Shown here: positions 44,134-63,937 of the stretch, piece by piece | How the letters are laid out: each line of letters starts with the position of its first letter | How positions within the stretch are numbered: position 1 is the first letter of the stretch | Assembly: GCF_006345805.1 (NCBI RefSeq) | Contig: NC_043019.1 | Location: 30,627,360 to 30,691,359, forward strand | Direction: 5' to 3' | DNA from: Octopus sinensis | Taxonomy: Eukaryota | DNA: 64,000 nt | Position numbers and translations under genes: made by a program | Notes under the pieces: generated by a model | The model's database searches: none | Told to the model about the DNA's origin: nothing | Seen by the model: the letters and a program-made list of their open reading frames with translations, nothing else

Positions 44134-46362
44134 TTGTGTGTCTGTGTTTGTCCCCACAACTTTGCTTGACAACTGATGCTGCTGTGTTTATGTCCCTGTA
44201 ACTTAGTGGTTCGGCAAAAGAGACCGATAGAATAGGTACTAGGCTTACAAAGAATAAGTCCTGGGGTTGATTTGCTCGACTAAAGGCGGTGCTCCAGCAT
44301 GGCCACAGTCAAATAACTGAAACAAGTAAAAGAGTAAAAGAGTAAAGAGTCAGTTGGCAAAGGTACACCATTCAGACCAGTCCCGTAGAGATGAGAAAAT
44401 TCGTCATCATCATGGGACATATCAGTGGTGACAAGGGTTTGGACGATATTACCAATGGGGCATACCAAAATCTTAGTACGAAATATTTTCTTTTCATAGT
44501 TTTAGCTTTGCCTCATGTATAAGTTGAAACTCCAGTTTCTGCAGTTAAAATCAAGAATAAAATTGAGTGATTTGTAAATGTGTAAATACAGCATTCATTT
44601 ATTGAAAGGCTGTGATTATTTTCTGTGTCTACATGAATGAAATGATAAAAAATACAAGCCAAGAAACATACCTGCCATCATATTGTATAATTCAATATTA
44701 TCAAATGGTTCGGTGAGAGTGCTATTCACAAAACTTGGTCCAGAAGCCAGGAAAAAGGCCTGAAAAATTAGAAAAGTAAAAATGAAAAATTTTTGATAAG
44801 AAAAAATATGAAATATCTTTCTTGAAAATATATACACATATTCATACGAGTTAATTTAGCAAAGACCAAAGTATTGGTAAGTAGGAAACAGACAAATCAC
44901 AAATCCCTTCAGGGAGATAGCTCTGCTCAGTATGTAGGAAAGGTGTTGGGAGAAACTCCATAAAGTGTACCCAGTGCAAGCTATGGACACATAAGAGGTG
45001 CAGCAGTGTTACAAGAAAACTAACAGAGAGAGTAGTATCTACATGTGGCAGATGTGCAGGTACATTAAACACCAGGAATGTACAAAAAATAGACCTCCTC
45101 CAATGTTAATGGGGGATCCTTAGAAGTAGTAGACAGTTCCCTTTACTTAGGGGATGAAGTTGGTAGCGGGGAAAGTCATTTGACTGTGGCCATGCTGGGG
45201 CACTGCCTCGAAAAGTTTTAGTTGAACAAATCAACCCCAGGACAAGATTTTTTAAATCCTAGTACTTACTCTATTGGTTTCTTTTGCCAAACTATTAAGT
45301 TATGGGGACATAAACACACCAACACTGGTTGTCGAGTAGTGGTGAAGGACAAACACAAACACAAAGACACACACAAACACACACACACACATGACGGGCT
45401 TTTAGTTTCTGTATACCAAAACCTCTCATAAGGCTTTGGTTGGCTCGAGGCTATAAGTAGAAGACACTTGCCCAAGGTGCCACGAAGTGGGACTGAATCC
45501 GAAACCATGTGATTGGGAAGCAAGCTTCTTACCACAGAGCTATGCCTTTGCTTGTATGCTGGAAAATACAGTAAATTTTTCTAACCATAACTGAAGCCAG
45601 CTCAAGCAGTTTTGTTTGCTTGTTCCTTCTCAAGCCATGCCTGGCTCATAAGGGCCAGTTTCCCAGTTTCCTTGGCATATAGGTTCCCCACCTGCAACGG
45701 ACTGGCGTTCTATCCAGGTAGAACGCCAGTCCGTTGCAGGTGAGCTGCAAGATGCAGAAGGAAGGAGTGAGAGAAAGTTGTGGCGAAAGAATCAGTAGAA
45801 GTTCACCATTACCTTCTGCCGGAGCCACATGGAGACTAGGTGTTTCACTCATAAACACACATCGCCTGGTCTGAGATTCGAACCTGCGATCCTTCGACCG
45901 TGAGTCCGCTGCTCTAACCACTAGGCCATGTGCCTCCACCAAGCAGCTTTAATCCTGTCCAAAAACAAGTCCAAACAATGTAGGATTGCAATGTGTGTCA
46001 TTAAAGGGGCAAGAGAGGGTTATACTGTTGCAAATTAACCGTTAAGTAATTATAAAATTATATGACTTGTGAAGATCATTATAAGAAATTGACTCTACTT
46101 GAAATGCAGGATACAACTAGTCATAAATAATGTCTTAAAGTATTGTATTAAACAGCATCTCATTTAAATAGCGACAAATTGTATTGAAATTTATTGAAAG
46201 ATGGACAAATAAAAAAAAAGAAGAAAAACTATTTTAAAAAAGCGGAAAAGAAAAGAACAAAAAAAATTTCTATTTTCATTATTATTAATATTATTATTAT
46301 GGTGGACTGAGTTTTATTGGCCTTGGATACATATTTATATATATATATATATATATATACAT

Positions 46363-63937: not shown

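Follow-up and report, generated by a model that had tools for sequence, protein, structure and literature searches.

Does the gene lying on the minus strand of the 64,000-nucleotide stretch of Octopus sinensis DNA analysed here (NC_043019.1, positions 30,627,360 to 30,691,359; the window) encode an ENPP-type protein in which an active phosphodiesterase (PDE) module is coupled to an upstream one that has lost its catalytic residues? A first-pass annotation had proposed this for two modules, A and B, after noting that A appears to lack one of the histidines that bind zinc in ENPPs, while B keeps its visible ligands. The loss of this histidine from module A is confirmed by the data presented below. 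As for the pairing, the idea of a dead or altered module A in frame beside an active module B is supported, but not as an arrangement of two modules: the sequence data support a three-module type II membrane ENPP, built of three successive pairs of PDE and nuclease-like (NUC) domains, in which A takes the middle position and the first module is degenerate as well. All together, we assign a probability of roughly 0.78 to the reading of this gene as a giant three-module ENPP having PDE2 as a pseudo-enzyme module and PDE3 as the sole active one. Specifically, module A of the window consists of the C-terminal third of PDE2 followed by NUC2, and module B of the N-terminal two thirds of PDE3.

In the window the gene is represented by 17 exons, adding up to 696 codons, which contain no stop, are all bordered by AG and GT and have compatible phases throughout. 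The first exon candidates were located using approximate human ENPP1, ENPP2 and ENPP3 sequences, employed as leads only; each exon located in this way was then re-checked through its splice sites, its phases and the homologues returned by the search tools. On the resulting protein model, the Pfam profile PF01663 (Phosphodiest) scored 267.9 bits (E=2.4e-79, cut-off 23) in two stretches, with module B covering profile positions 1-259 and the module A fragment forming the second stretch. The match to PF01223 (Endonuclease_NS) is borderline, reaching 23.7 bits against a cut-off of 23. The L2 linker carries the PAPNNGT motif and is followed by a nuclease-like domain, as in ENPP1-3.

The region of the lost histidine is encoded by the first three exons of the gene in the window, which map to positions 63781..63937, 50207..50261 and 44672..44759. 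Their acceptors (ttcatttttccag|G, ttttccgacag|G and ctaatttttcag|G) show a pyrimidine tract ahead of the AG, and their donors read CA|gtaagt, CAA|gtaagt and CAG|gtatgt. The first exon is entered in phase 1 (x+GT), which fits a direct splice from the ...VSDH-G exon of Octopus bimaculoides, and leaves two bases; the second, of 55 nucleotides, supplies one base and ends in phase 0, the phase in which the third begins. The third exon is supported by its splice sites, its phase and its alignment to ENPP3. The splicing of these exons and the protein segment read from them by the first-pass annotation were reproduced with an identical translation.

The catalytic centre of human ENPP1 is formed by D218, T256, N277, D376, H380, D423, H424 and H535 (PMC10761680). 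When the segment was compared with all PDB chains through phmmer, ENPP3 was the top match (E=1.4e-13), followed in order by ENPP2, snake-venom phosphodiesterase, ENPP5, ENPP4, ENPP1 and ENPP7, and a tyrosine was found opposite the zinc-ligand histidine of ENPP3 (H483, equivalent to ENPP1 H535). This Tyr is encoded by the codon TAT at 50230-50228, and just past it, after the DN pair, the loop of module 2 has lost three residues, in line with the shorter segment that had been noticed earlier. In a MAFFT alignment including nine other PDE modules, H-G is present in all the others, and Y-D together with the three-residue gap appears only in the window and in O. bimaculoides. The same column, extended to about 353 ENPP-type PDE domains, contains 337 His and only three Tyr. 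O. bimaculoides copies of module 2 itself account for two of these, and Tyr is also found in this column in XP_055354591 (P0191).

The Tyr exon and its AG and GT sites are kept without gaps in the orthologous O. bimaculoides locus (L001 17462-17516, where L001 is our coordinate system for that locus and L001 1-10500 corresponds to CM046623.1:31440128-31450600). A sequencing error, TAT in place of CAT, was ruled out because TAT occurs in two independent octopus assemblies. For a different, His-containing exon between 63781 and 44759, the three minus-strand frames of this interval were scanned with C..H[GAS], G.HG, HG..DN and DN...MQA, and no plausible candidate was found. One element of the earlier description did not survive the comparison between species: the cysteine pattern had been regarded as conserved, but the Cys encoded by TGC at 50245-50243 in the window is Gly in O. 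bimaculoides. Along the 18 codons of the Tyr exon the two species differ by four amino-acid changes (E to K, C to G, L to I and K to R) and by no synonymous change, and such a fast change is what one expects, from the sequence, of a former active-site loop freed from its metal. When O. bimaculoides module 2 was used as a protein query, orthologues from additional cephalopods were not among the results.

When the protein model derived from the window was used as a query, the O. bimaculoides 'venom phosphodiesterase 2-like' protein XP_052831915.1 (P0001, 1172 residues) was retrieved with 100% query cover, together with proteins of Owenia (annelid), Mytilus (bivalve) and Batillaria (gastropod) showing 87-98% query cover and the same PDE-NUC-PDE order. 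In XP_052831915.1, which reaches 53.7 bits with PF01223, the hmmsearch match of the module A fragment spans residues 9-128. The O. bimaculoides locus is collinear with the window, with long intron blocks about 89% identical; overall, identity amounts to 94.4% in exons and 88.7% in introns, and to about 92% at the amino-acid level over the orthologous exons. All 15 exons tested align without gaps and with conserved AG and GT, which marks the source of the window as closely related to O. bimaculoides. Just ahead of XP_052831915.1 ends an upstream gene with PDE, NUC and PDE matches, the product of which is XP_052832021.1 (P0275, 1005 residues). An older model, XP_014771948.1 (P0276, 2111 residues), joins both as ...NCINLVIVSDHG|..., i.e. 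through VIVSDHG, and has the layout N-terminal cytoplasmic tail, transmembrane (TM) segment, Thr-rich (Ser/Thr-rich) stalk and PDE1-NUC1-PDE2-NUC2-PDE3-NUC3, the TM segment and the stalk having been recognised by eye from the sequence. In this protein Pfam found four Phosphodiest stretches, PDE2 being split in two, as well as Endonuclease_NS; the hmmsearch PDE matches cover residues 86-464, 781-988 and 986-1104, and the third module was placed by blastp at 1423-1804. No SMB domain (PF01033) was found by Pfam in XP_014771948.1 or in the scallop and zebra-mussel relatives described below, which sets them apart from the two-SMB layout of ENPP1-3.

The point at which the current RefSeq annotation divides the O. 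bimaculoides gene is a run of N at about L001 2740-3090, inside PDE2. The DHG exon lies at L001 3274-3384 and ends in phase 1, like its module 3 counterpart (window 1406-1298); since GT is the pair of bases that opens the SENLNIS exon, the join is in frame and creates a Gly codon. In conclusion, XP_052832021.1 and XP_052831915.1 are probably one three-module gene split at an assembly gap, which would correct the O. bimaculoides RefSeq set, in which it is presented as two 'venom phosphodiesterase 2(-like)' proteins. The RefSeq gene is machine-annotated, and XP_052831915.1 carries a dubious 5' exon, 'MLLK', with no signal or anchor. Both O. bimaculoides Gnomon models also read into the intron after WWNAEP (VRKNSYSKYYNN..., interval L001 30179-32816). 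They are probably wrong at this point, where a module 3 exon (window 7660..7726) is missing from them, because Argonauta has a counterpart of that exon.

To compare the modules, each was aligned to human ENPP3 and read at D167, T205, N226, D325, H329, D372, H373 and H483; all patterns below follow this order. In O. bimaculoides, module 3 keeps all eight residues (D,T,N,D,H,D,H,H), module 1 is degenerate (G,S,D,V,E,D,H,S), and module 2 reads H,S,E,N,H,D,H,Y, five of the eight positions being changed (D to H, T to S, N to E, D to N and H to Y). In the window, module A shows Y at its sole visible position, and module B shows D,T,N,D,H,D,H at its seven visible ones, so that the claim of intact visible ligands in module B holds. 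Specifically, the module B residues sit in SLDGFR (the Zn2 Asp, 12867-12850) and KTFPNH (the nucleophile Thr, 12756-12739), both in exon 12724..12889; in IIAN (the Asn, exon 9994..10104, which runs to WWNAEP); in PDESGH (the Zn1 Asp and His, 5009-4992, exon 4968..5094); and in ADHG (the Zn2 Asp-His, 1307-1299, exon 1298..1406). The eighth residue, the His of GSHGYDN, lies past window position 1 and is kept in O. bimaculoides and Argonauta.

The other seven PDE2 positions fall outside the window in O. sinensis and were read in O. bimaculoides only, where four of the seven are changed. Examination of the PDE2 motifs in this species, which had been suggested for the part beyond the window, gave a divided answer: DHG is retained, and SLDGFR, TFPN, IIDN and PDxxGH have become SLHNFN, SLPN, IIDE and PNPNLH, respectively. 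Next to the nucleophile position, O. bimaculoides module 2 carries Leu instead of the Phe that we take, from ENPP structures, to be the nucleotide-stacking residue. In addition, about 55 residues are absent between DHG and the NISTKINC strand; they are equivalent to one module 3 exon (window 580-425), and the insertion loop of octopus module 2 is shortened as well. L001 3385-10487 was searched for this post-DHG exon with tblastn and by enumeration of phase-compatible AG...GT exons, and only noise was obtained (best local score 27). In the window, NUC2 lacks the EF-hand-like DxDxDG of ENPP1/3 (27002-27034, minus strand); module 3 of XP_014771948.1 reads DYNFDGRADD. The EF-hand-like region also differs between species: O. 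bimaculoides NUC2 reads GPIFKNTTIGGDVDD, and module 3 keeps GPIFDYNFDGRADD.

Selection was assessed by the Nei-Gojobori method on the window and O. bimaculoides sequences, with a binomial test against neutrality, a comparison per module that had been proposed for this locus. Over all 409 codons of module A, dN/dS was 0.22 (31 nonsynonymous and 36 synonymous changes, P=6e-9); the PDE2 fragment taken separately gave 0.33 (9 and 7, P=0.037) and NUC2 0.20 (15 and 19, P=1e-5). The visible part of PDE3 gave 0.39 (26 and 17, P=0.005). The constraint on module A is at least equal to that on the active module, and because of this purifying selection (dN/dS 0.22, P=6e-9) we regard module A as a maintained pseudo-enzyme module rather than a decaying one. 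Structure prediction was consistent with a retained NPP fold. AlphaFold2, run on O. bimaculoides PDE2 with an alignment of 34 sequences, returned a model with pLDDT 81.7 and pTM 0.82, in which pLDDT fell below 50 only at the deletion junction (206-215) and in the former His loop (258-268, KTEGKKINYDL), and Foldseek matched it to ENPP3 and ENPP1 with a TM score of 0.8; a single-sequence run was uninformative (pLDDT 36.5). Module 2 would combine, as a pseudo-enzyme is expected to, loss of catalytic residues with purifying selection and a predicted NPP fold.

The physical link between module A and module B would be provided by a single exon, 22960..23174. Read along the minus strand (23174-22960), it contains the end of NUC2 (RLRTFLPS, 23072-23049), followed without a stop by an L1-like linker (23021-22974) that resembles the pre-PDE linker of ENPPs, as seen in Owenia (SWVEEPCMEEMKCPAGF). 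The exon ends at the donor AA|GTAAGT, the phase of which fits the acceptor of exon 12889-12724, and both Gnomon versions read through KNMS-N-GPTLIF as the phases predict. The junction pattern TFLP..LW...C...C...LDGFR is common to Owenia, Mytilus, Batillaria, Mizuhopecten and Dreissena. Genomic frame, exon phases and the one-exon junction support a reading frame that would be continuous across the modules, in agreement with the Gnomon models and with orthologous proteins of other phyla.

The junction donor overlaps an in-frame stop (22956-22961, minus strand; ...TCA AA|G TAA GT), the TAA of the unspliced sequence being at 22958-22956. Intron retention or polyadenylation at this point would end the protein after NUC2 (...KNMSK, then stop), without the sole active PDE module, and such a product could be a non-catalytic isoform.

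What would these changes mean for the protein? In the favoured reading, PDE2 has lost the Zn1 His that in ENPP1 is the partner of D376 and H380, a replacement by Tyr seen in the window, and, if the window species resembles O. bimaculoides, would also lack the Asp of each zinc site, the Thr nucleophile, the Asn that contacts the phosphate and an exon-sized piece. Left with one of its three Zn1 ligands, short of one Zn2 ligand, with Ser in place of the Thr and with no Asn, PDE2 would be unable to run the two-zinc in-line displacement and, judging from its residues, is almost certainly inactive. PDE3 is the only module expected to hydrolyse nucleotides, because only this membrane-distal PDE keeps the full two-zinc site. 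The most likely role of modules 1 and 2 would be that of a rigid glycosylated stalk or scaffold, which may take the place of the SMB domains that the octopus protein lacks and would project and orient the active module off the membrane; they may also offer a non-catalytic surface for ligands or partners. The architecture would have arisen by internal tandem duplication, with the last NUC exon fused to a pre-PDE linker. It is probably old, being common to bivalves, gastropods and annelids, and the loss of catalysis from modules 1 and 2 would be lineage-specific.

Several points weigh against this reading. Of PDE2, the window does not cover the N-terminal two thirds, and four of the five substitutions are seen in O. 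bimaculoides only. The joining of the three modules rests on a Gnomon model, on frame logic and on conservation, and in the current RefSeq set the gene is divided where the assembly has a gap. The dN/dS values come from a single species pair with small counts (in the PDE2 fragment, 9 nonsynonymous and 7 synonymous changes), and the AlphaFold2 model of PDE2 is biased by its alignment towards the family fold, so that it speaks for consistency only. The Zn2-side residues of PDE2 (His, Ser, Asp and His) could in principle bind one metal and support residual or altered chemistry. Finally, a scaffold or binding role for modules 1 and 2 is something that we infer only.

Some of these points are taken up by other explanations. 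Modules 1 and 2 might bind nucleotides, cyclic dinucleotides or partners, and feed or allosterically gate the active distal module, a proposal that we consider unlikely; the module 2 pocket would then have been remodelled into His/Ser/Asp/His plus Asn/His/Tyr. If true, octopus and, to a varying extent, other spiralians would possess a surface ENPP of about 2100 residues that unites 'sensor plus enzyme' in one chain and responds to purinergic or cGAMP-type signals outside the cell. Somewhat more doubtful still is a neofunctionalised module A, in which the altered ligands (His/Ser/Asp/His on the side of Zn2 and Asn/His/Tyr on that of Zn1) would build another metal site, for example a mononuclear or Tyr-ligated one, with a new substrate, or in which nucleotides would be bound tightly and not cleaved. 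Three of the eight positions are kept in module 2 (the equivalents of H329, D372 and H373), the D to H and T to S replacements are themselves potential ligands or nucleophiles, and the Tyr is conserved in both octopuses in a module under purifying selection. However, the exon carrying this Tyr is the fastest-changing piece, with its four amino-acid changes in 18 codons, no synonymous one and a lost Cys; in the model its loop stays under a pLDDT of 50, module 2 has been shortened by a segment the size of an exon and by part of its insertion loop, and the nucleotide-stacking Phe has become Leu.

Two further proposals would dispense with a functional module A in the same chain as B. That A and B are separate tandem genes, their pairing being an annotation artefact, would explain the in-frame TAA directly after the junction-exon donor, the presence of two RefSeq proteins at the O. 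bimaculoides locus and an Argonauta model that starts inside the junction exon. We consider it very unlikely: the RefSeq split does not coincide with the A/B junction, being placed at the N-gap inside PDE2; KNMS-N-GPTLIF is crossed in both Gnomon versions, with the end of NUC2 and the linker in one stop-free exon; the interval from 22960 to 12889 showed no exon that would give B a signal peptide, a TM segment or an SMB domain; and the same fused junction is found in annelid, bivalve and gastropod proteins. Least credible of all is a module A decaying as a relic, with unused or neutral exons and only module 3 functional. It would account for the loss of many catalytic residues, of the EF-hand-like motif of NUC2 and of an exon-sized segment, but all ten module A exons are open, phase-compatible and ungapped in both species, with conserved splice sites; dN/dS (0.22) is significantly below 1, and exons are more similar than introns (94.4% vs 88.7%). 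Moreover, a module 3 standing alone would lack both a membrane anchor and a signal sequence.

The favoured three-module reading finds its closest parallels among other ENPPs, which control extracellular ATP, pyrophosphate, lysophospholipid and cGAMP signalling. Vertebrate ENPP1 and ENPP3 (NPP1 and NPP3/CD203c) and snake-venom phosphodiesterase have the same module of PF01663 PDE, L2 lasso and PF01223 domain and the same type II topology, and the eight-residue catalytic set of ENPP1/ENPP3 is identical to that of octopus module 3. The octopus protein differs from ENPP1/ENPP3 in having three modules per chain instead of one, no SMB domains, and two of three PDE domains without the zinc-site residues. 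To our knowledge, all seven vertebrate ENPPs are single-module active enzymes. An exhaustive HMMER search identified relatives of about 2200 residues in Mizuhopecten (2199 and 2243 residues) and Dreissena (2234-2238 residues), and a partial one in Nucella (1950 residues); the three-module accessions are XP_021341604/OWF35917 of Mizuhopecten yessoensis, XP_052277761 of Dreissena polymorpha (2238 residues) and KAL8580376 of Nucella lapillus. Two-module models, several of them partial, were found in Owenia fusiformis, Mytilus, Batillaria, Patella, Helobdella and Priapulus. These protostome multi-module ENPPs share with the octopus protein the PDE-NUC repeat, the fused junction and the N-terminal TM segment with its Ser/Thr-rich stalk. 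In public machine annotations they are named 'uncharacterized protein' or 'venom phosphodiesterase 2-like'.

Their catalytic residues vary. All eight are kept in scallop modules 1 to 3, in Nucella modules 2 and 3 and in both Owenia modules, and the N-terminally truncated Nucella module 1 shows D,H,H at its three visible positions. Dreissena module 2 (P0122) reads D,T,E,E,L,D,H,H, i.e. it has three losses only (N to E, D to E and H to L) and keeps the His where the octopus has Tyr; the first module of Patella (P0124) reads G,Q,D,-,-,D,H,S. Among these multi-module ENPPs the octopus protein shows the most extensive loss, affecting modules 1 and 2, and the sole Tyr at the His position. Degenerate ENPP-like proteins with a single module also exist, namely echinoderm 'venom phosphodiesterase 2-like' proteins (Anneissia, Amphiura and Acanthaster), avipoxvirus alkaline phosphodiesterase-like proteins of the CNPV048 type and XP_055354591; they keep the ENPP fold and differ from the octopus protein in their single module, their independent losses and their other patterns. 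Examples of the latter are D,T,D,G,K,T,S,D in echinoderms (P0212/P0213/P0223), D,T,N,G,L,D,H,H in canarypox CNPV048 (P0174) and G,S,D,S,R,D,H,Y in XP_055354591. On the basis of these patterns, catalysis appears to have been lost repeatedly in the ENPP fold.

Tandem catalytic domains with one inactive, conserved copy serving a binding or regulatory role are known from carboxypeptidase D and from the receptor protein-tyrosine phosphatases (D1/D2). The octopus ENPP differs from both in its unrelated fold and chemistry and in having two of three copies probably inactive, each copy with a nuclease-like partner. Spiralians build two- and three-module ENPPs, and in octopus two of the three modules would be conserved pseudo-enzymes; scallop with all modules intact, zebra mussel with one partly degraded and octopus with two apparently dead would form a natural series for the study of the NPP fold without catalysis. 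Our literature searches found this gene undescribed, and likewise molluscan ENPPs with several modules or with pseudo-enzyme modules; what came closest was a report of a Dreissena polymorpha plasma ENPP with a DNA/RNA nuclease domain, which rises 4.6-fold after poly I:C challenge (PMC7148315). This rise may indicate that ENPPs of molluscs take part in immunity or in nucleotide signalling.

The remaining exons of the gene, all on the minus strand, complete the picture. After the three exons of the Tyr region come the exon of the PAPNNGT-bearing L2 'lasso' linker, which contains the end of PDE2 and runs to TNICPQ (40478..40635), and six NUC2 exons extending from 35836 to 22960. These start with 35660..35836 (LLSNEPQ...LPFGLPY) and continue with 30029..30152 (VRSTTKPP...), 28003..28053, which is 100% identical in nucleotide sequence to O. 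bimaculoides, 26976..27117, in which the EF-hand-like motif is lost, and 25363..25516, the junction exon 22960..23174 being the last. Seven PDE3 exons follow, down to position 425. Besides those named above for their ligand motifs, they comprise 7660..7726, which is matched in Argonauta but not in the assembly interval of O. bimaculoides, the 34-nucleotide exon 6076..6109, and 425..580, which runs to TNET and corresponds to the segment absent from module 2. Past position 1 the gene goes on.

No other convincing gene was found among the long open reading frames of the window, nor any tRNA gene with ARAGORN, the rest consisting of microsatellites and repeats resembling short interspersed nuclear elements (SINE-like). 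The window is about 2.4 times longer than the corresponding O. bimaculoides interval because of SINE-like insertions and of (TA)n, (CA)n and (CAT)n-type arrays. The introns are filled with these dispersed SINE-like repeats, each about 140-250 bp long, which are also found many times in the O. bimaculoides locus. One family, D7/D8, is present at 1457-1671, 4374-4588, 11570-11784, 21270-21484, 24857-25071, 33987-34201, 43838-44052 and 48337-48551, and further families (D9-D17) accompany it.

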